A stretch of DNA of 64,000 bases from Hyaloraphidium curvatum SAG 235-1. Its lineage: Eukaryota; Fungi; Monoblepharomycota. The stretch's first letter is position 1. Every line of letters begins with the position of its first letter. Position numbers and translations under genes: made by a program. The notes below the pieces were generated by a model. That model was not told the origin of the DNA. It did not search any database and worked only from the letters and a program-made list of their open reading frames with translations. Of the stretch, positions 15,402-38,805 are shown piece by piece. The stretch is taken from positions 62,001 through 126,000 of the forward strand of contig JAIVFI010000031.1 of the NCBI GenBank assembly GCA_025558095.1. Reading direction: 5' to 3'.

Positions 15402-15451
15402 GTGCAGTTTAACACCGTGTCTCAAACACTGAGTCACCCAATATCCCCAAC

Positions 15452-16444
15452 ATGGCAGAGCCGCACGCCGCCGTCCCGGCAAAGCAGCCGCTCGGCGAGT
15501 TCGAGCTCATTTCCAAGTACTTCACGCGCCCCGCCCGCCGCGCGGTGCTCGGTGTCGGCGACGACTGCGCGCTGCTCGCCCCCCGCCCCGGGCGGCACCT
15601 CGCCGTGTCAACCGACATGCTGGTTTCCGGCCGGCACTTCTTCCCCGACGTCGACCCCGAACGGCTCGGGAAAAAGTGCCTCGCGGCGATTCTCAGCGAC
15701 CTCGCTGCGTGCGGCGCCGAACCCCTCGCGTTTACGCTGGCGATTTCCATCCCCGAACCCGACGAGGCCTTCCTCGCCGCCTTTGCGCGCGGGCTGGTGT
15801 CCGCCGCCGATTCGCACGACATCGAGCTCGTCGGCGGCGACACCACAAAAGGCCCGCTCGCGATCTGCATCACCGTGCTCGGCGACGTGCCGATCGGCGC
15901 CGCGCTCCTCCGCTCCGGTGCCGGGCCGGGGGACGACATCTGGGTCAGCGGGGTGCTGGGAGATGCCCGCCTCGCGCTCGACTCCATGCGCGGATTGCTC
16001 CCCTTGGGGGGGCGCGAGCTCGACGCCGTGGGGCCGGCGCTGGAGACGCCCGAGCCGCGGATCGCGCTGGGCGTCGCGCTCCGCGGCACCGCCACCTCCG
16101 CGATCGACCTCTCGGACGGGCTGCTCGGCGACCTCGCGCACATCCTCGAGCGATCGGGCGTCGGCGCTACCGTGGTTGCGGACCAGATCCCGCGGAGCGC
16201 CGTCCTCGCCGCGCAGCCCGCGAACGTGCAGAAGACCTGCGTGCTATCGGGCGGGGACGATTACGAACTGCTGTTCACGGCCAGCTCCCAATTCATCGAC
16301 GCCGTGCTGGAGGCGGGGCGGACGGCCGGGGTGGCGGTGACGAGGATCGGCAGGATCGAGGCCGAGGGCGGTCTCCGGGTCGTGGACGCAGACGGCGTGC
16401 CGATTGGCGACGTCGGAGGCTCGTACAACCACTTTCGCTCGTGA
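15452..16444 (+). CDS. thiL: Thiamine-monophosphate kinase (bacterial type), copy 1, intronless
   Basis: GEFELI..YF, LGVGDDCA, STDMLVSGRHF, LSDLAACGA, GGDTTKGPL, IDLSDGL, GGDDYELLFT and terminal YNHF motifs. Confidence 0.93.
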   Translation: MAEPHAAVPAKQPLGEFELISKYFTRPARRAVLGVGDDCALLAPRPGRHLAVSTDMLVSGRHFFPDVDPERLGKKCLAAILSDLAACGAEPLAFTLAISIPEPDEAFLAAFARGLVSAADSHDIELVGGDTTKGPLAICITVLGDVPIGAALLRSGAGPGDDIWVSGVLGDARLALDSMRGLLPLGGRELDAVGPALETPEPRIALGVALRGTATSAIDLSDGLLGDLAHILERSGVGATVVADQIPRSAVLAAQPANVQKTCVLSGGDDYELLFTASSQFIDAVLEAGRTAGVAVTRIGRIEAEGGLRVVDADGVPIGDVGGSYNHFRS

Positions 16445-16495
16445 TCAACATGTTCAGGACTTGATTTTGGTTGGGTGACGAACCGAGGAATCAGG

Positions 16496-16813
16496 CATCC
16501 TCGACAACCTCGGTGTCTACGCCGCCTCGAACGCCCGGATCGGCGCCGCCGCCGCCGTCCTGCTCGAGGGCGCCGACGCCGCCGCCCGCGCTGGCCTCCC
16601 CGACCCCGCCCTCGCCGCCGCACTGCGCGACCACGCCGCCCGGCTCGAGGCGTGCGCCGCCAGGTGGGCGCCCGCGAGGTTCCTCGGGTTCGAGGTGACC
16701 TACGGCGCGCTGCGGGCGCTAGTGGTGACGCTGCTGACGGTCGGGTTCGCGCTGTGGGGCATGCTGAGGGGACTGGGGGTCACCGTGGTGCTCGAGTCGT
16801 ACTGCTACGGATG
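16496..16813 (+). pseudogene. 3' fragment of the multi-TM (GRL-like) gene, duplicated from about 30215-30566
   Basis: ILDNLGVYAASNARIG...ARFLGFEVTYGALRALV...ESYCYG* with no 5' part. Confidence 0.85.
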
Positions 16814-17137
16814 AGGCGTCCTGCTCAGCACTGGCGGGCGGGGATTTGGGGTCGGGAGGCGAGGTTACGGAAGACCAAAGAGGCGCGATTCACGAGGGAG
16901 GAAAGCGGCGCGCGAGGGCTTGGAAATCGCAGATAAACGCTTTTCACCGATGGATCACGTTTCGCGAACTCGAAGACAGCAGCCGGAGCGGCACGCTCTC
17001 ACGGTCCCAAACCGCTATTCGACAGCCCAAACACCTCGTCCTCATCATTTCCAGCGGTCTCCCCTTGAAGTTGGCCTCCCCCTCGCCCCGTTCGGTCCAG
17101 GCATTCTGGGCCGGATGAAGGACTGATCGTCCGTCCC

Positions 17138-18105: not shown

Positions 18106-18788
18106 GGCGATGCCCAGGTTATGGCTATGCTCGTCGAGGGGACGGGTTGTCCCTGGAAAAGGGCACCAGTAGGGGGGTGCGACCCCCAGAAATGGGATAG
18201 GGACGAGGGAGATAACCTCGTTCGTAGGGCTGCTGCCACGCCCACAAAGAGCTCGGTCACCTCAGAGAGTAAACGGGCCTGAGGTGGTCACGCTGACGCA
18301 CTCGCGCCGCGCGGCGAGAAGACGGCAACGATTAAGGTCCGCAGCGGGCGGCTTCCTCGCCCATCGCGCGAAATCCGAATCAGCCTGCGGAGCGTCCCCC
18401 GATCTCCCATGCCCCCCTTTGCCCACGTGGGAGGATTGATCTTCGCGCGGCCGAGTCCCGGCGCGAATTTGGCTGCACGGATGCGCTCGCGCGAGAGGAG
18501 CGGGTCGAGGCGGAGGGCGGGATCCGCGTCAAGCGGCGTGCCGATCGGCGTAAGTCGGAGATTCGTTCAAAAGCACTTTCGATCGTGGTATCAAAACAAG
18601 TTCAGCATTTTGCTCGAATTACGCCGCCCATGAAACCGCGCCATGCCGGCCTCTCGGTCCATCCATCGATCAAGCTCGCTTCGGGGGCAATCTGCTTCGA
18701 GGGCCGAAGCCCCGACGGTCACGTGACTGAGCGTCGCCCAGACCTGGTGTCGTCGGAAACCGCGGTCCTGGGCATTCCATTCGATGCC

Positions 18789-19765
18789 ATGGAGGAGAAT
18801 GGGATGGTGGCGGAGGGCAAAGCGAACGGCGCCGCGGGTTCGGACGCCCCGCCGCCAGTGCCCCCCGCCGCGGACGCGTCTTCCGCTCATTTGGGGCCCC
18901 GTCAACGCGCCAAAGCGAAAACCCAACATCTCGATATTGTCGCCGAGGCGTATTCCGTCGCGTCAAAGTCGACGGCACACGGCGTGTGGCGCATCTTCGA
19001 CCGCCGCCGGCGCTGGGCCAACCGCATTTGCTGGGCGTTCCTGTGGCTGACGGCCTTCTCGCTGTTCGTCACCTACTTGGTGCTGCAGACCGAGTACCTG
19101 GCCAGTTTCCCCACATCGACCCTGATCACGCAGGTGTTTGTCTCGCCGACGCCGTTTCCGGCCGTCAGCGTGTGCATCTCCTCGCTGAACCGCACCACCG
19201 TCGCCGCATTCCTGCGGCCGCCGCGGGGCTCCACCGTGCTGGAGCAGGTCGCGGACATCTTCAACGGCTCGGGCGTCGCGTGCTTCTACGGGCTGCACAC
19301 CGCGCGGCAGCTGCTGCGCTACGAGATCCCCTCGGACGGCTCGGGCTGCTCGGCCCGCTCCACGGTCAGCTTCGTGGACTACCCCTTCGCCTGGTCCCCG
19401 ACGCTGTGCATCACCACGCCCGGCGACCTGGTGGCGGACCAGCCCGGCTACACGCTCACCATCGTCGGCCGCGTCCCGGGCCTGGGCGTCCTGGACCAGC
19501 TCACCTACGGAATCCGCCAGGCCGACGCCCAGTTCCAGCCGATGCTGGCCAACCTTCTCTCCACTGGCATCCACACCCGGGAACGGTTCCACATCGGCAC
19601 CACCCGCAACATCCGCAACTGCGACCCCCAGCCTGGCGGGCAGCCCAAATGTCTCGCCGACTTCCAGCAGCAGTGCGTCGAAAAGGCCTGCTCGTGCCGC
19701 TATCCCGCCGTTGCCGGCAATGTCTCGGGCTCCTCCCTCTCCGACCTGGTCGAGCAGCTCCCCGG
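18789..19765 (+). pseudogene. Truncated DEG/ENaC channel paralog lacking the distal ectodomain and TM2
   Basis: Highly similar to 30972-31940 up to LSDLVEQLPG, after which the ORF runs into unrelated sequence. Confidence 0.85.
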
Positions 19766-20514
19766 CTGGGGGACGGCGGGGGCGACGGTGTCCTTCCGCA
19801 TGGTCGAAATGAACCCGGACCCCACCCATTTTATTGAGTATTCTCATCTCGAAATCGATCGCTTCTCTAGGCATCGTCACCAGCCTTCCAGGCCTGCGCA
19901 AAGTCGGACTCCACCCCCTGTCCCACCGCCGCCAGCCGACCCGCCACCGTCAGCAGTGCTGCGTGGCGTCCGGGCGCCTGCACCGTCGGGTAAGGGCGTT
20001 TGGGTTTACCCGACTGCACAACGCTGGGGTGAGCCGGCAGATGGCTACACTACCGCAGCTGGAGCTCAGGTTTTGGATCAAACATCGGTGTGGTGCTTTG
20101 TTCAGGGAAAGCAGATCGGGATTTCCGGGATGTGCATGCTGGAGCTTCTCGTCAAGCACCGGCCGAGTGGACGCATGATTCCGGCCAATTTCGGCGGCCG
20201 GCATTTGGAGCAGGGTGGGAAGGGAAGCGCAGGCGTGCCGTTCTGCGGATCCGTCTTGTTCAGGGAAACGATGCGAGAGGCCTTTGGAAATGGAAACCCA
20301 GCACACCCTCACGTCAGCGGTCATGCCGCCCCTGATCGTAAGCTAACGTCGAACGGTCCGCCCATGCCATAGAGAGTTGACGTGATTTACACGTAGTTAG
20401 CTATGATCCGTGTGGTGCTCTTCTCCTCCTCTCTTTCCTCCTCCGTCTTCGCCCTCGAGCAGTTTCAAACTTGTCCATTACACGGCACCGGCCAATCACG
20501 TTTAGGAATTGTTG

Positions 20515-23794: not shown

Positions 23795-24820
23795 ATGTCC
23801 CCCCCCGCGACGCCGATCCGAGTCGCCCTCGACTGGACGCCCAACACGCTCCACTCCGGGTTCTTCGTCGCCCTCGACCGCGGGCTGTACGCCGCGGCCG
23901 CCCTTGACGTGTCGCTCGTTTCGCCGGCCGAGGACGCGTACAAGGTGTCCCCGGCCAGGAAGCTCGCCGCCGGGGATGCGGACTTTGCCGTCGCGCCGAG
24001 CGAGACGGCCATCGCCTACGCGCTGCTGCCCAAGGACAAGGGGCTGCCGCGGCTGACCGCCGTCGCCGCCCTGGCGCAAAAGGACACGAGCGCCGTCGTC
24101 GTCCGCTCCTCGTCGGGGATCGAGCGGCCGGCGCACCTGGACGGCAAGAGCTACGCGTCGTATAACGCACGGTTCGAGGGGCACATCGTCCGCGCCCTCG
24201 TGCGCGCCGATGGAGGAAAAGGGGACGTGCAGGAGGTGTTCCCGCCGCGGCTGGGGATCTGGGACACCGTCCTGAACGGGGAGGCCGATTCGACGTGGGT
24301 GTTTTTGCCGTGGGAGGGAGTGCAGGCGCGCCGGGCGGGGAAGGATCTGCGGGCGTTCGGGGTGGAGGGAGCGGGGGTGCCGTACGGGTACACGCCGATC
24401 TTGCTGGCGCGGCACGGGGATCTGGAGGGGGCAAAGGCGGAGGCATTGAAGAGGTTCATGGAGGCGACGGCGGAGGGGTACAGGATCGCGGCGGCGGATC
24501 CCGGGGCGGTCGCGGCCGCGCTGGCCAAGGTGCCGGAGCTGGCGGGGCAGGAGGAGTTCCTGGCCGAGAGCATGGCGGAGCTCGCGCCAGCGGTGCTCAA
24601 CGGTGCCGGCAAGTGGGGCGTAATGGAGGAAGCCCGCTGGGCGGCATTCCTCGGCTGGTTGGGGAAGGAGGGGCTGCTAACGGCCCCGGGGGCGCGTGGT
24701 GGTAAAGCGGTCGGGGTGCCCCTCGAGGGATCGAGCCATGGGGCCGAGGAGGTGGTGACGCTGTCGGTGCCGGTGCCGTTGCGGGCCGCCGACCTCTTCA
24801 CGAACAGTCTCCTGATTTGA
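23795..24820 (+). CDS. NMT1/THI5-family, ThiY-like periplasmic-binding-fold protein, intronless
   Basis: LDWTPNTLHSGFFVALDRGLY, PAHLDGKSYASY, ADSTWVFLPWEG and PYGYTPIL. No CCCxC motif of true THI5 and no signal peptide. Confidence 0.88.
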   Translation: MSPPATPIRVALDWTPNTLHSGFFVALDRGLYAAAALDVSLVSPAEDAYKVSPARKLAAGDADFAVAPSETAIAYALLPKDKGLPRLTAVAALAQKDTSAVVVRSSSGIERPAHLDGKSYASYNARFEGHIVRALVRADGGKGDVQEVFPPRLGIWDTVLNGEADSTWVFLPWEGVQARRAGKDLRAFGVEGAGVPYGYTPILLARHGDLEGAKAEALKRFMEATAEGYRIAAADPGAVAAALAKVPELAGQEEFLAESMAELAPAVLNGAGKWGVMEEARWAAFLGWLGKEGLLTAPGARGGKAVGVPLEGSSHGAEEVVTLSVPVPLRAADLFTNSLLI

Positions 24821-27884: not shown

Positions 27885-28004
27885 TGTGGCGGATGCGCGA
27901 TGGTGCCCCGCTTGTCGCTGCATCCTCGCACGCTTACTTGGAACAACTTGATCCGTGCAGTGTAACACCGTGTCTCAAACACTGAGTCACCCAATATCCC
28001 CAAC

Positions 28005-28997
28005 ATGGCAGAGCCGCACGCCGCCGTCCCGGCAAAGCAGCCGCTCGGCGAGTTCGAGCTCATTTCCAAGTACTTCACGCGCCCCGCCCGCCGCGCGGTG
28101 CTCGGTGTCGGCGACGACTGCGCGCTGCTCGCCCCCCGCCCCGGGCGGCACCTCGCCGTGTCAACCGACATGCTGGTTTCCGGCCGGCACTTCTTCCCCG
28201 ACGTCGACCCCGAACGGCTCGGGAAAAAGTGCCTCGCGGCGATTCTCAGCGACCTCGCTGCGTGCGGCGCCGAACCCCTCGCGTTTACGCTGGCGATTTC
28301 CATCCCCGAACCCGACGAGGCCTTCCTCGCCGCCTTTGCGCGCGGGCTGGTGTCCGCCGCCGATTCGCACGACATCGAGCTCGTCGGCGGCGACACCACA
28401 AAAGGCCCGCTCGCGATCTGCATCACCGTGCTCGGCGACGTGCCGATCGGCGCCGCGCTCCTCCGCTCCGGTGCCGGGCCGGGGGACGACATCTGGGTCA
28501 GCGGGGTGCTGGGAGATGCCCGCCTCGCGCTCGACTCCATGCGCGGATTGCTCCCCTTGGGGGGGCGCGAGCTCGACGCCGTGGGGCCGGCGCTGGAGAC
28601 GCTCGAGCCGCGGATCGCGCTGGGCGTCGCGCTCCGCGGCACCGCCACCTCCGCGATCGACCTCTCGGACGGGCTGTTCGGCGACCTCGCGCACATCCTC
28701 GAGCGATCGGCCGTCGGAGCGACCGTGGTTTTCGACTCGATTCCGCGGAGCGACGTGCTCGCCGCACAGCCCGCGAACGTGCAGAAGACCTGCGTGCTCT
28801 CGGGCGGGGATGACTACGAGCTGCTGTTCACGGCCAGCCCCGAATCCATCGACACCGTGCTGGAGGCAGGGCGGACGGCAAAAATGGCATTGACGAGGAT
28901 CGGGCGGATCGAGGCCGAGGGCGGCCTGCGGGTCGTGGACGCGGATGGCGTGCCGATCGGCGACGTCGGAGGCTCGTACAACCACTTTCGCCCGTGA
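28005..28997 (+). CDS. thiL: Thiamine-monophosphate kinase (bacterial type), copy 2, intronless
   Basis: Same ThiL motifs as 15452..16444. Confidence 0.93.
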   Translation: MAEPHAAVPAKQPLGEFELISKYFTRPARRAVLGVGDDCALLAPRPGRHLAVSTDMLVSGRHFFPDVDPERLGKKCLAAILSDLAACGAEPLAFTLAISIPEPDEAFLAAFARGLVSAADSHDIELVGGDTTKGPLAICITVLGDVPIGAALLRSGAGPGDDIWVSGVLGDARLALDSMRGLLPLGGRELDAVGPALETLEPRIALGVALRGTATSAIDLSDGLFGDLAHILERSAVGATVVFDSIPRSDVLAAQPANVQKTCVLSGGDDYELLFTASPESIDTVLEAGRTAKMALTRIGRIEAEGGLRVVDADGVPIGDVGGSYNHFRP

Positions 28998-29081
28998 TCA
29001 ACGTGTTCAGGACTTGATTTTGCTTGGGTGACGAACCGAGGGAATAAGGAATGTTCCGATTCCTCGCGCTGACCAGACACG

Positions 29082-30566
29082 ATGCCCGCCGCGCTCACCG
29101 ACGAGGAGCTCTCCGTGGCGCTGCCGTTCGTCGGCAAGCCGCCCGCGCCCCGTCCGTTTGACGGCGGCGGCCCGGACGCCGCGATGCGGGCGCTGCTCGC
29201 GTCGCTCTCCGCCGCGGAGCGCCCGACTGCCGCCGGCCTGCAAAGCGCGGCAGCCCGCTCGTCGCGCTTCCTCGGCTTCCTCGCTCGCTGCTCCCTGCCG
29301 TTTAACCAGCCCGGCACGGTCCGCTGGTTCATCGTGCTCTGCCCGCTTCTGTCCGCCGCGGTCCTGGGCCTCGTCGCCGCGTATCCCGCTCTCGCGGGGA
29401 CGGCGGCGCCTTTCGGCGCAAAGAACCTCGCGCTGGGCTCGGTGGCCTACGCCATCTTCGTGTTCGCGGTCTCGGTGCCCATGCTGGGCGTGTTCAGGAT
29501 GTGGGACGCGTCCACCGACCTTCGGCAGCAGCCGCTCACCCTGTTCTGGCGCTGGCGCCTGGCCGTGGACCGAACCCCGTCATTCAACAGCAAGGGGCAG
29601 CCGGACGAGGAGCTAGCAGCGCCGGCTTTGGGGCGGCTCGTGGCACACAAGGAGGGGGACCCGACCTGCCCCTGCCATCTCCCATCGTGCGCTGGGAACC
29701 TGGGCCACCAAGCCGGATTGTGGACCCTCGGGGATATCTTGGGCCGCTTCGGGCTGTTGTTTGCGATGAGCTTCACTCCGTTGTGGACGCCCATGGTTTC
29801 ATCAGCTTTTCTGTGGAAGACATGGTGGGGCACACTGATCGGCGTTATTGTGCTGGTCATGAATGTTTCCTGGTCCTTGTTTCTGTGTGTAACGGCTGCG
29901 CGGCGCTTCCGGGCGGCAATGACTCAGCTGTCGGGGAGGCTCATGTGCCGCTGCATCGCTGTCGAACTCGGCAACGTGCTGGACGAATATGAGCATGACC
30001 GATGGGGCCAAGCGGAGTCAAAACGCGACTGGGCCCCCGTCTACGCCATCCTCAATTACCTCACGCACGCCTGGGGTGCATGGCACAACATGCTCCTGGC
30101 CCGCACCTACACCGTCATCTCCTTCGCCGTCCTCCCTCCCGTCATCCTGAACCTGGCCGCGGGCGCCTGCATCCCGCTGTGGGAGCTCTGTGCGGGGGCG
30201 TGGTGGTTGTTCTACATCCTCGACAACCTCGGTGTCTATGCGGCCTCGAACGCCCGGATCGGCGCCGCCGCCGACGTCCTCCGCGAGGGTGCCGACGCCG
30301 CCCGTGCGATCGCCGCCGAATCTGCCGACGCCGCCGCGCGCGCTGGCCTTCCCGACCCCGCCCTCGCCGCTGCGCTGCGCGATCACGCCGCCAGGCTCGA
30401 GGCGTGCACGGCCAGGTGGGCCCCGGCGAGGTTCCTGGGGTTCGAGGTGACCTACGGCGCGCTGCGGGCGCTGGTGGCGACGCTACTGACGGTCGGATTC
30501 GCGCTGTGGGGCATGCTGCGCGGGCTGGGGGTCACCGTGGTGCTCGAGTCGTACTGCTACGGATGA
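29082..30566 (+). CDS. Multi-pass membrane protein, possible gustatory-receptor-like/7TM ion channel superfamily
   Basis: 494 aa with about 7 hydrophobic segments. A long helical stretch precedes the C-terminal RFLGFEVTYGALRALVATLLTVGFALW hairpin. Confidence 0.7.
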   Translation: MPAALTDEELSVALPFVGKPPAPRPFDGGGPDAAMRALLASLSAAERPTAAGLQSAAARSSRFLGFLARCSLPFNQPGTVRWFIVLCPLLSAAVLGLVAAYPALAGTAAPFGAKNLALGSVAYAIFVFAVSVPMLGVFRMWDASTDLRQQPLTLFWRWRLAVDRTPSFNSKGQPDEELAAPALGRLVAHKEGDPTCPCHLPSCAGNLGHQAGLWTLGDILGRFGLLFAMSFTPLWTPMVSSAFLWKTWWGTLIGVIVLVMNVSWSLFLCVTAARRFRAAMTQLSGRLMCRCIAVELGNVLDEYEHDRWGQAESKRDWAPVYAILNYLTHAWGAWHNMLLARTYTVISFAVLPPVILNLAAGACIPLWELCAGAWWLFYILDNLGVYAASNARIGAAADVLREGADAARAIAAESADAAARAGLPDPALAAALRDHAARLEACTARWAPARFLGFEVTYGALRALVATLLTVGFALWGMLRGLGVTVVLESYCYG

Positions 30567-30971
30567 GGGCGTCATGGTGCAGAGCGGGATCCGTGCCCGG
30601 TTCGACGGGCCGGGATTTGGGGGGGTATCGAAACCCTGTGTGACTCGAATGGCACATGTTCTATAGATTGCTTCTCGCTTGCGAGTAGATCATCCCCGGC
30701 TTCTCGAGCGGACCTCAACGTCACCAGCCGGAGGTCACCACGCACTCACGTTGGGCGCCACATAATGTTGCTTTACCCCTCCCGCAAGGTAGATCGGACA
30801 TGGGACCACTTCATGCAGGCCTTTCGTTCTATCCATTGATAACTAGACCGTCGCTCGGCAAGCTGCTACTCTCGCTATCCCGAGCGACGCGGGAAGCCCC
30901 GACGGTCACGTGACTTGGCGTCACCCGGACCCGCTGGCGTCGGAACCGCGTCGTGCACTCCATTCGATGCC

Positions 30972-32488
30972 ATGGAGGAGAACGGGACGGCGGAGGAGGG
31001 CAAAGCGAACGGCGGCGCGGGTTCGGACGCCCCGCCGCCCGTGCTCCCCGCCGCGGACGCGTCCTCGTCCCATTCGGGGCCCCGCCAACGCGCCAAAGCG
31101 AAAACAGAGCACGTCGACATTGTCGCCGAGGCGTACGCCGTGGCATCAAGGTCGACGGCGCACGGCGTGTGGCGCATTTTCGACCGCCGCCGGCGCTGGG
31201 CCAACCGCATCTGCTGGGCGTTCCTCTGGCTGACGGCCTTCTCGCTGTTCTTCGCCTATCTGGTACTGCAGACCGAGTACCTGGCCAGTTTTCCCACGTC
31301 GACCCTGATCACGCAGGTGTTCGTGTTGCCGACGCCGTTCCCGGCCGTCAGCGTGTGCATCTCCTCGCTGAACCGCACCACGGTCGCCGCGTTCCTGCGG
31401 CCGCCGCGGGGCTCCACAGTGCTGGAGCAGATTGCGGACATCTTCAACAGCTCGGGTGTCGCGTGCTTCTACGGGCTGCACACCGCGCACCAGCTGCTGC
31501 GCTACGAGATCCCCTCGAACGGCTCGGGCTGCTCGGCCCGCTCCACGGTCAGCTTCGTGGACTACCCTTTCGCCTGGTCCCCGACGCTGTGTATCACCAC
31601 GCCCGGCGACCTGGTGGCGGACCACCCCGGCTACACGCTCACCATCGTCGGACGCGTGCCCGGCCTGGGCGTGCTGGACCAGCTCACGTACGGCATCCGC
31701 CAGGCCGATGCCCAGTTCCAGCCGATGCTGGCCAACCTCCTCTCCACGGGCATCCACACCCGGGAACGGTTCCACATCGGCATCACCCGCAACATCCGCA
31801 ACTGCGACCCCCAGCCGGGCGGGCAGCCCAAATGCCTGGCCGACTTCCAGCAGCAGTGCGTCGAAAAGGCCTGCTCGTGCGGCTACCCCGCCGTCGCCGG
31901 CAACGTCTCCCTCTCCGACCTCGTCGAGCAGCTTCCCGGATCCTGCGCGGACAAGTACCTGAACGGCACCTGCGCCATGGCCCAGCACGGGTTCCCGTGC
32001 CCCTTGTGGATCCCCGGCACCAACTGCACCCTCTCGCAGCTCTGCGGCCCGGACGCCGCGCAGCGCGCCTGCCCGTACCCCTCCTGCGACGAGACCGCGT
32101 TCCCCTCTGCCAGCAGCTTCGCGCCCCTCGATGCTGGGGAGCTCGCGGCGCTTGGGGTCGACGCGGGGGCGGCCTCGGGCGCGTTCCTGCTCTCGGTGGT
32201 GCTCGAGTCGCAGATGGTCAGCAGGGTGGACGAGGAGCCGGCGTACACGCCGCTGAGCTACTTCGGTTCCGTCGGCGGCATGGTGGGTCCGACTCTGGGG
32301 TGCGGCGCGCGATCGGGTTGGCTCAACGGCGTTCCACGTGGTGGCAGATGAGCCTGCTGCTGGGGTTCTCTGTGCTCACGGTGTGCGAGTGGATCGAGGG
32401 GTGCTGCGTCATCGGGCGCAAGGTGGAGAGGGCGGCGACCGGGGGTTACGAGGACGTCATCGCACCAGAGGGGGCCGGAGCGGGGTGA
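30972..32488 (+). CDS. DEG/ENaC (amiloride-sensitive sodium channel family) subunit, about 483 aa, intron 32283-32347
   Basis: Pre-TM1 STAHG; TM1 RICWAFLWLTAFSLFFAYLV; FPAVSVC; Cys-rich thumb (CLADFQQQCVEKACSC...CPYPSC); EEPAY; TM2 YFGSVGGM|MSLLLGFSVLTVCEWIE. Confidence 0.9.
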
Positions 32489-33297
32489 GCATGGCAGCCC
32501 AGAGCTCAGACGCCTCTGGACGAGGGAGCGCTTCGGGGACGGGAGACCGTCCAACAAGGTCCCCGACCGACTCGATGTCGGATGCCTGCAAAGAGCTGGA
32601 AGCGAGTGCAGGCAGGTGTGCTGTGCACGGTTCTGGACCACGGTGGGTCGAGCTGCTTTGCATCCACTCGCGTCCTCTCAGCCTCTCTCCCGGTTGGCCA
32701 GCGCGGTTAGCTCAGGGGCGATGATCGCCCGGTGCGCCAAGGCGGCGAACGAAGTTGAGGCGCGCCGATCTGGCGCGAGCCTATGCCTACTGCTCCGACG
32801 TGCCGCACCCAGGTGCCCGCACGTCCCATCCCGCACGTTCCGTGCTCATCCACGTCTCTCCCGGCGCGAGTGGACCGAGCGAATCCTCGTCGGGCTCGGG
32901 TTAGCAGGTGGAGGGATCTTTCAGGACCTGATCCATGTTCCGGCAGCATCGCGAACGACGCCGCACCGGTCGCGGGCCGCTGCCAATGTCACCCCCGGGT
33001 TGAGCAGGGAGGCCAGCATTGGACGAGAAGAAGACATCTCCGTCGGTGGGAACGCCGGGCATCGCGTCCAGTATTTGGATGGCAGGCAGGTGCGGGCGGG
33101 AATCGAGGAAACCTCGTACGACGAACAAGTGGGTGACGGCGCTCTTCACAAATGATAGTTGATTGAAGGGCCCTGGACCCGTTGAAGCCCGCGGCGATGA
33201 CAAGAACTCTCTTCTACGCATACATGACGACGACACACTGATAGACGCCAATTCCGAATAAACACTCTTCTTTCGCTCCAATCCGCCGTCGTCCGCC

Positions 33298-36965: not shown

Positions 36966-37297
36966 CTTGGAATCTCCCCTCAGCTCCGTCCGCGTACAGA
37001 AATCAATTCCCAAAATCCGATTCTACAGCAGCTTCACACGAGGAGAGCACAAGGGTTGCGGCGGCGGAGTGGGAGGGCCGACGCGTGACGGGCCGTGACG
37101 CGAAAGATAAACAACGCGTCGTTCACCTTACACGGCCACACTTGAGACCGCCGTCTCTCGCGGAAAGCTACCAGAAGACCGGATTTTATCGCTCCTCGAT
37201 CTTCCCGACGAGGTTAACGCCGTGTGCTCCCGGATTTAGGACCGCGTTAGAATCCCACCCCGGAGCTCGGCGTCCCGGTCTCGTTGCGCGGCCGCCG

Positions 37298-38805
37298 ATG
37301 GAGCCAATTTCGGAAGCATTCTTCCGCGCATGCCAGCAGGGCAACGCGGCACGCGTCGGCGAGCTGCTGCGGACGCCCGGCGTGGACGTCAACCGGAAGG
37401 ACCCCGATGGGCGGACGGGGTTCAGGATGGCGTGCCAATGCCGCCACGCAGATGTCGTCCGGCTCCTGCTGGCGGACGGGAGGGCGGACGTCAACATGGC
37501 GGACGAAGGCGGGGCGACGGCCTTCTACGTGGCATGCAGCCAAGGGGACGTTGACCTCGTCGCCATCCTCCTCCACGACCGGAGGGTCGATGTGAACGCG
37601 GCGGACAGGAACGGAGCCACCGGGTTCTACTTGGCGTGCCAAAACGGGGACCTCGCCCTCGTTCGGGTCCTCATCGCCGACCCCAGGGTCCAGGTCAACC
37701 TCAAGGACGGCAACGGTGCCACGGCCTTCTATGTCGCCTCCGCGGGCGGCAAGGCGGACGTGGTCCGCCTCCTCCTCGGCTGCAGCCGGGTGGACATCAG
37801 CATCGCGGACGGCAACGGTGCCACCGGGCTGGAGGTGGCCCGGGCTTTCGGGCGGGACGACGTCGTGCTCGCCATCGAGCGGGCGATGGACGCGTGGCAG
37901 GCCCGGGCAAAGGCCGCGCCGGCCATTTCGCGGCCGACGAGCTCCTTCTTGGCGGACGAAGCCGACGTGGACATCGACCTTGCCGCGCCCCTCGGGACGG
38001 GGTATTTCGGCACCGCGTACCGCGGAACGTGCTTCGGGATGGCCGTCGCGGTGAAGGTGATCAACGTGGATCGCTTCGGCCCCGAAAGGGCGAGGCAGGC
38101 GCTCGAAGACGAGGTCAAGGTGTGGCTCGGCCTGCCTCACCACGACAACAGTGGGTGGAGCCTTCGCAAAGCTCCGCGGTTACGGACTGACGGAGACCAT
38201 CCGCCCAGTTTGCCCGCTCACAGGCTACAGGTTCGATCCTACCTACCTCGTGACCAAGCTCTGCCAAGGCAAGAACATGACTGACTACCTAGAGGCAAAA
38301 TCCTGGGACCGTGACCTGGCCGTCCGGCTCCTCCGAGACACGGCGGCGGGCCTGGCCTTCCTCCACGCCAAAGGTGTCATCCACAAGGACCTCAAAGCCC
38401 AGAACGTCCTCGTCGATCTCCGCGGCGGCGAAGCTGTGGCCATGATCGCGGACTTTGGCCTGGCCAATGTCCGCAGATCCCTGCAGGCCACCCCGGACGG
38501 CGTCCCTTCGAGCTACGAAGGCCCCGGCGTCGTTCGGTATGCTGTGCTACCAGTGTTTCGCCCGCGAAGCTCCGTTCAATGACACGCGGCCCGAGGCGGT
38601 CGGCGTCAGGATATGCCGCGGAGAACGCCCGCAGCGGCCCTACGACGTCCCGGACGCGCTGTGGAGGATGATGCAGCTCTGCTGGGAACCCGACCCGGCG
38701 AGGCGGCCCGCCGCGACGCAGCTGCTGCAGGTGCTGCAGAAGCTGGCGCAGGGCGAGGACTCGGCCGCCTTGGCCCTCGCCAAATCCTTCGGTGGCGGCC
38801 GATGA
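37298..38805 (+). pseudogene. Ankyrin-repeat and TKL-type protein kinase gene, disrupted near 38525 (subdomain VIII-IX missing, frameshift)
   Basis: 5-6 ankyrin repeats, LGTGYFG, VAVK, HKDLKAQN and DFG. The intron starts at 38151. No APE motif. The C-lobe (SFGMLCY...CWEPDPARRP) is in another frame. Confidence 0.75.

Follow-up and report, generated by a model that had tools for sequence, protein, structure and literature searches.

A transcribed DEG/ENaC-family channel gene with an intron inside TM2 in the fungus Hyaloraphidium curvatum

The genome of the fungus Hyaloraphidium curvatum contains a transcribed, two-exon nuclear gene that encodes a subunit of the DEG/ENaC superfamily of channels. 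We hold with considerable confidence the overall reading that this is a real, expressed fungal subunit gene, whose channel mechanism may be deduced from the family and whose long residence in the lineage is favoured. The gene lies in a 64,000-nt stretch of a single contig, which is called the window below and to which the coordinates refer unless a contig is named. The DEG/ENaC family, known outside this fungus almost exclusively from animals, has roles there in touch, the sensing of acid, signalling by peptides and the balance of salt, and its origin is unsettled. The fungal gene belongs to a new, divergent and lineage-restricted branch of this known family, in a kingdom that has no report of it in the searchable literature. 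We found no description of a fungal DEG/ENaC protein in the literature covered, which excluded subscription journals, and a broad published survey that ran BLAST against Fungi found none (PMC10507113). Automated annotation at NCBI has already labelled one of the H. curvatum paralogues an 'Amiloride-sensitive sodium channel-domain-containing protein'. The features of the gene and of its partial duplicate, with the evidence for each, are as follows.

30972..32282, + strand: exon 1 (437 aa), which runs from the cytosolic N-terminus through the HG motif, TM1 and the entire ectodomain into the first half of TM2 and ends in GSVGGM
31161..31166, + strand: pre-TM1 His-Gly (H64-G65 in S-T-A-H-G-V), invariant in the clade and aligned to S-T-L-H-G-I of chicken ASIC1
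31197..31286, + strand: TM1 helix (aa 76-105) with W82 and W86, assigned as helix by DSSP at pLDDT 94-98
31287..32240, + strand: ectodomain (aa 106-423, about 320 aa) including the Cys-rich thumb, from conserved Cys columns and the fold
31338..31358, + strand: FPAVSVC (aa 123-129) at the start of palm beta-1, aligned to FPAVTFC of ASIC1
32283..32347, + strand: spliceosomal intron within TM2 (65 nt, GT..AG), from an RNA contig and the alignment with the paralogue P0003
32348..32488, + strand: exon 2 (46 aa and the stop codon), comprising the second half of TM2 with G-F-S, the conserved Glu and, in the cytosol, a short tail
32363-32371, + strand: G-F-S filter (exon 2 residues 6-8), from the translation, the ASC profile and a table of TM2 columns
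32489..32914, + strand: 3' UTR up to the limit of the RNA contig, from the contig joint table
32642-32700, + strand: second spliced intron (59 nt, GT..AG), in the 3' UTR, from the RNA contig
18789-19766, + strand: truncated tandem duplicate covering aa 1-323 only, without the distal thumb and TM2 (tblastn 92.6% identity, blastn 91%)

The open frame begins with the ATG at 30972, ends with the stop codon at 32486-32488 of the + strand and totals 483 codons over both exons. A public run (X1) contains 71% of the sampled words of the channel locus, and its contigs match the window with zero mismatches. A single 940-nt contig of this run omits exactly 65 nt between 32282 and 32348, as well as 59 nt at 32642-32700. 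Our guess that X1 is an RNA run is argued from these two canonical GT..AG joints in a perfectly matching contig. The initial annotation had proposed that the 65-nt intron must be removed to complete TM2, and the contig does skip precisely 32283-32347. With this intron removed in the RNA, the GFS-bearing second half of TM2 is joined in frame, and the translation of exon 2 opens with M-S-L-L-L-G-F-S-V-L-T-V-C-E. Furthermore, the last residue of exon 1 aligns to M432 of P0003 and exon 2 aligns from M433 (60% identity to residues 433-479, E 6e-16), and hence the splice gives an uninterrupted TM2. In the database the gene is represented by P0001 (459 aa), an unspliced read-through without the filter. 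The RNA contigs cover the gene from position 31181 on, with the first 209 nt of the coding sequence outside this coverage. We therefore infer the start codon to be the ATG at 30972, which is the first in the frame and opens an M-E-E-N-G start that the duplicate shares.

Downstream, the contig leaves its match to the window at 32914 and continues into unmatched letters, and the bin at 32836-32922 has about ten times the depth of the others. The pattern at this 3' end suggests either a further splice or a second, highly expressed transcript that overlaps. A scan for bacterial-type promoters and terminators, whose bacterial models are uninformative for a eukaryotic locus, returned zero sites.

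The Pfam and fold runs were performed on exon 1, exon 2 was handled separately, and the full-length paralogue P0003 served as a stand-in for the whole subunit. Exon 1 matches the ASC profile (PF00858) with 55.7 bits and E 5.9e-15, the gathering score being 23.6. Exon 2 alone gives a weak match to profile positions 438-454, as expected for 17 residues. When a clade profile built from the gene and four relatives was compared with the PDB, ASIC1 chains were matched with E 1.6e-14, in an alignment that covers the thumb and TM2 as well as the HG motif and FPAV-x-x-C. The corresponding values were E 2.7e-7 for FaNaC1 and E 4.6e-5 for alpha-ENaC. The Pfam and ASIC1 matches together exclude chance, and the gene is thus confirmed to encode a DEG/ENaC-superfamily subunit.

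The predicted structure leads to the same family. The AlphaFold2 model of exon 1 has a mean pLDDT of 86.6 and a pTM of 0.77 and is confident across the ectodomain. In a Foldseek search of the PDB, its top matches were all DEG/ENaC entries (FaNaC and ASIC) with E 1e-16 to 1e-17. VIA-align superposed it on chicken ASIC1 (4ntw_A) with Z 19.9 and an rmsd of 2.8 Å over 288 of 410 residues; the other Z values were about 17.5 for ASIC5, 16.7 for ENaC, 16.6 for FaNaC and about 13 for PAC/TMEM206. The model of P0003 (pLDDT 86.1) contains the full two-TM fold and superposes on ASIC1 through TM2, the helix of which has a break at the G-F-S belt (residues 437-440). The initial annotation had claimed an intact DEG/ENaC-family gene, to be checked with the ASC profile and against the structure of ASIC1. 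Both comparisons, the latter made for a single subunit with the exon 1 model, upheld the claim, as did the PDB profile match and Foldseek. A search of a protein atlas returned only generic arthropod-rich ASC clusters.

The subunit consists of two TM helices flanking a single large loop, with TM1 at residues 76-105 and TM2 starting at residue 427 of the exon 1 model and continued by exon 2. The STAHG motif, the TM1 Trp, FPAVxxC and the Cys-rich thumb, all named as hallmarks in the initial annotation, were located at the positions listed above; the HG motif, FPAV and the thumb align residue by residue with ASIC1. In an alignment of 83 family sequences that includes animal members, F123, P124 and C129 are nearly invariant, and W82, the G-G before TM2, the filter Ser and the Glu after the filter (exon 2 residue 14) reach at least 90% conservation. 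Within the loop there are 16 Cys and six N-x-S/T sequons. A total of 12 Cys fall in columns of the same alignment conserved to at least 90% (C129, C165, C187, C207, C278, C288, C301, C303, C334, C352, C367 and C372). The GxS selectivity filter was likewise correctly recognised as the GFS of exon 2, and G-F-S is found in animal members too, for example in a Patella protein. In the alignment, a Ser takes the place of Asp433 of ASIC1. Another Ser, four residues ahead of the filter Gly, occupies the column of ASIC1 Gly439, where the H. curvatum paralogues carry Gly. This column is presumably that of Ser583 in the amiloride site of alpha-ENaC; with this mapping, the TM2 column table supports the earlier assignment of a Ser to that site. 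The description of the ectodomain as compact holds to a mild degree: at about 320 aa it is somewhat smaller than that of ASIC1 and clearly smaller than those of ENaC and FaNaC; 288-293 of its residues superpose on ASIC1.

Among known systems, ASIC1 (chicken and human; PDB 4ntw, 2qts and 9e4d) is the best match in both sequence and fold. Both proteins have two TM helices, a Cys-rich thumb, the HG motif, FPAV-x-x-C, the Glu after the filter and the G-x-S belt, where a break in TM2 is modelled in P0003. However, the identity in the structural alignment is merely 15-18%, the filter is G-F-S instead of G-A-S, Asp433 of ASIC1 is replaced with Ser, and the loop has 16 Cys against 14 in ASIC1. Unlike the ASIC1 hosts, H. 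curvatum is a walled, non-motile fungus. ENaC and FaNaC share the fold (Z 15-17), and the fungal channel has the Ser of the alpha-ENaC amiloride-site column, but the match to ENaC is far weaker than that to ASIC (E 4.6e-5 vs 1.6e-14; Z 16.7 vs 19.9). Both ENaC and FaNaC have far larger ectodomains, and the alignment lengths of the fungal channel show no counterpart of their extra finger insertions. With an ectodomain of this size and a closer affinity to ASIC, the protein does not fit the ENaC subfamily. PAC/TMEM206, which likewise forms trimers of two-TM subunits and whose beta-rich ectodomain is related, was considered as well and rejected. It scores well below every DEG/ENaC entry, is an anion channel, and has no thumb, no finger and no ASC match.

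NCBI places H. curvatum, a freshwater organism, in Fungi; Monoblepharomycota; Hyaloraphidiomycetes. The gene is situated in a 573-kb contig of an assembly of 31.9 Mb in 55 contigs. A six-frame search of the genome found about five family loci on two contigs, four of them full-length and one being the truncated copy. The proteins P0002, P0003, P0004 and P0009 are located on these same contigs, P0009 together with the gene and P0003 and P0004 on contig 12, and all four bear the name of H. curvatum in NCBI. The initial annotation's proposal of a fungal host is thereby borne out. The intron content of the paralogues varies: P0004 has none, P0003 has four, the last of which lies about 10 residues upstream of the TM2 intron of the gene, and P0009 has one near there.

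The truncated duplicate lies about 12 kb upstream of the gene. A tblastn search of the window did not find the rest of it beyond residue 323. Its frame is open and runs on into unrelated sequence, which the NCBI model P0002 (609 aa) includes. It belongs to a segmental duplication of patchy extent, in which 28000-29052 corresponds to 15447-16498 (96%), 30215-30576 to 16496-16823 (84%) and 30893-31939 to 18706-19765 (91%). An ORF of 494 aa at 29082-30566 (+), directly upstream of the gene and co-oriented with it, is partly co-duplicated and has no Pfam match at E ≤0.001. Other ORFs in the neighbourhood, at 23795-24817, 28005-28994 and 37085-38281, encode an NMT1/THI5-like protein (E 4e-37), an AIR-synthase-related protein with N and C domains (E 2e-29) and ankyrin repeats, respectively.

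The gene has few close relatives elsewhere. An exhaustive HMMER scan of 1.84 billion cluster representatives gave 494 matches at E ≤0.001, only seven of which fell below 1e-30. All seven belong to the clade of the H. curvatum proteins, and the next match scores 86 bits. Outside H. curvatum, the clade members come from the Logan assemblies SRR23967301 and SRR26194948 and from metagenomes, one of which (IMG 3300059473) is a Lake Mendota co-assembly. The channel loci of SRR23967301 and SRR26194948 have neighbours in common. The Abhydrolase_3 and RWD neighbours of the SRR23967301 relative map, at 50-64% identity, 6-19 kb from P0004 in H. curvatum, which dates the locus to before these organisms diverged. 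All but one of the named sequences outside the clade are from animals, none is more than 24% identical in the 83-sequence alignment, and the next named relatives are from a limpet, jellyfish, sponge, leech, periwinkle, tunicate, priapulid and nemertean. Word-based searches found no other named fungus among the homologues.

In the stored versions of the metagenomic relatives P0007, P0008 and P0155, ORF-style calls read through short introns in or near TM2, and the pore helix is lost or garbled. Genes with such calls are easily overlooked, and it is likely that members of the clade are under-recognised for this reason. The best-scoring sequences outside the clade are tandem, apparently intron-less ASC genes on metagenome contigs with eukaryote-type neighbours (L016:2706-7635 and L018:3458-7479). 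A bacterial origin of the top metagenomic matches P0012 and P0015 was considered and rejected, as LSM, histone deacetylase, tandem ASC genes and sparse calls give their contigs a eukaryotic appearance.

Quick maximum likelihood trees (LG+C20 PMSF, 103 and 52 rows, SH-aLRT support) recovered the clade as monophyletic (SH-aLRT 99). It joins the backbone by a long stem, outside every sampled animal group, and is divided into three subclades, each with sequences from more than one source. In both quick trees its sister is P0017 (EukProt) from the ichthyosporean Chromosphaera perkinsii, with SH-aLRT support of 93 and 97. P0017 belongs to the same Pfam family and has a unicellular host, but it is just 21% identical to the fungal channel, and the pairing links two very long branches of 2.5-2.9 changes per site. 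A search of 5.8 billion proteins for homologues of P0017 found only P0017 itself. The pairing is compatible with an old opisthokont gene and is no proof of one. Other unicellular members of the Pfam family, none of them fungal, are the homologues in Tunicaraptor, Cafeteria and Symbiodinium (PMC10507113).

As the family is unexpected in fungi, the contig segment might stem from some animal or protist that contaminated the culture, but the chance of this is vanishingly small. The gene resides inside a 573-kb contig, its paralogues lie on two contigs and are named H. curvatum by NCBI, and flanking genes were duplicated along with it. Furthermore, the GC content is uniform across the window at 62-71%, the gene having about 68% like its surroundings, and the RNA contigs match with zero differences. 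For practical purposes, contamination is refuted by this evidence. The gene could also be a decaying or non-channel relic, transcribed without forming a conducting pore, or a surface protein resembling a receptor or adhesin. The tandem copy without the distal thumb and TM2 indicates that the family is being remodelled here, the middle residue of the filter is Phe, the Asp433 column holds Ser, and none of the non-animal members has a known function. We nevertheless consider a relic improbable. The frame is open over all 483 codons, the intron is spliced precisely, all the pore and gating motifs examined are retained, the model is confident throughout the ectodomain, and G-F-S itself occurs in animal members such as Patella. 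In addition, the comparison of the gene with its truncated duplicate gives dS 0.23 and dN 0.03, and the resulting dN/dS of 0.13 speaks against decay.

As to its origin, the family could have been acquired horizontally, with an animal or some other eukaryote as donor, such as a planktonic invertebrate or a protist of the same freshwater habitat, and have diversified afterwards, in which case the gene would not be an ancestral opisthokont one. The distribution is indeed very patchy: the seven representatives below 1e-30 in 1.84 billion are all from this clade, and both the word-based searches and the published BLAST of Fungi (PMC10507113) are negative for other fungi, so that vertical descent needs many losses. 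The clade is also nearer to ASIC-like channels than to ENaC or DEG in sequence and fold, and for the cases in heterokonts and in relatives of filastereans, lateral transfer has been weighed against massive loss with no choice made (PMC10507113). However, the clade has at most 24% identity to anything outside it, stands apart from all sampled animal groups and has already split into three multi-source subclades. It retains synteny with a relative whose neighbouring proteins are merely 50-64% identical, and the introns and GC content are native. Hence, any transfer would be old, with no donor visible, and we regard this origin as rather unlikely. We favour, although it is not proven, a long residence in the lineage, probably by early opisthokont descent with loss in other fungi, over a recent transfer from an animal. 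The presence of about five loci on two contigs, the differing number and position of introns among the paralogues and the dN/dS of 0.13 also point to such residence. In its full form, the favoured reading would be that DEG/ENaC channels predate the animal-fungus split, that one ancient branch survives in ichthyosporeans and, within fungi, solely in the Hyaloraphidium lineage with its uncultured relatives from freshwater, and that a small family of ASIC-like trimeric cation channels acts there, in a walled, non-motile cell of the plankton, as sensors of ionic or chemical cues; we propose this tentatively, as a plausible scenario that falls somewhat short of probable.

By analogy with the animal channels, three subunits would assemble around a central pore. 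TM2 is predicted to line this pore and to break at the G-F-S belt, as the model of P0003 suggests and as is the case in ASIC1, and the re-entrant pre-TM1 His-Gly loop would line its lower part. The putatively glycosylated, disulfide-rich ectodomain would couple an extracellular stimulus to opening, with movements of the thumb, finger and palm opening the pore. Na+ or another small cation could then flow down the steep membrane potential of the fungus.

As to the stimulus, the initial annotation had suggested chemo-, pH- or mechanosensing in zoospores. H. curvatum has been described as 'an atypical non-flagellated fungus' (PMC8371127), which makes a zoospore role unlikely. The transcript, moreover, comes from ordinary culture material, and the zoospore sensor was rejected. 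An ASIC-type proton sensor did not stand up to the comparison either. The HMM alignment pairs P-H-V-T of chicken ASIC1, the His of which we take to be His73 of the rat protein, with P-T-S-T of the clade, and thus the proton-gating His is replaced with Thr. His73, which follows TM1, has been called, together with K211, quintessential for proton-sensitive ASICs (PMC10507113). Gating by acid in the manner of ASICs is therefore not expected. Our best guess is that the channel may let the walled vegetative cell sense some dissolved cue, chemical or ionic in nature.

With this clade, which is transcribed, multi-copy and equipped with introns in an early-diverging fungus, the range of DEG/ENaC channels grows by a kingdom. 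Together with its relatives from lake plankton and the possible ichthyosporean link, the clade supplies concrete sequences for rooting the family tree, and its small, compact subunits offer a handle on what the family sensed before nervous systems existed. If the ancient-opisthokont reading is true, these would be the first such channels in fungi and a simple non-animal system in which to study the ancestral gating stimulus.

Two further observations were made in the course of the analysis. In a six-frame search of the Thermotoga maritima control genome, PF00858 gave a match above its cut-off, a surprise for a family of animal-type channels; either a spurious frame or a true distant prokaryotic homologue may lie behind it. 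Contig 1 of the H. curvatum assembly carries at least five identical copies of the 18S rRNA between 34318 and 261949, spaced tens of kb apart instead of forming a tight array.
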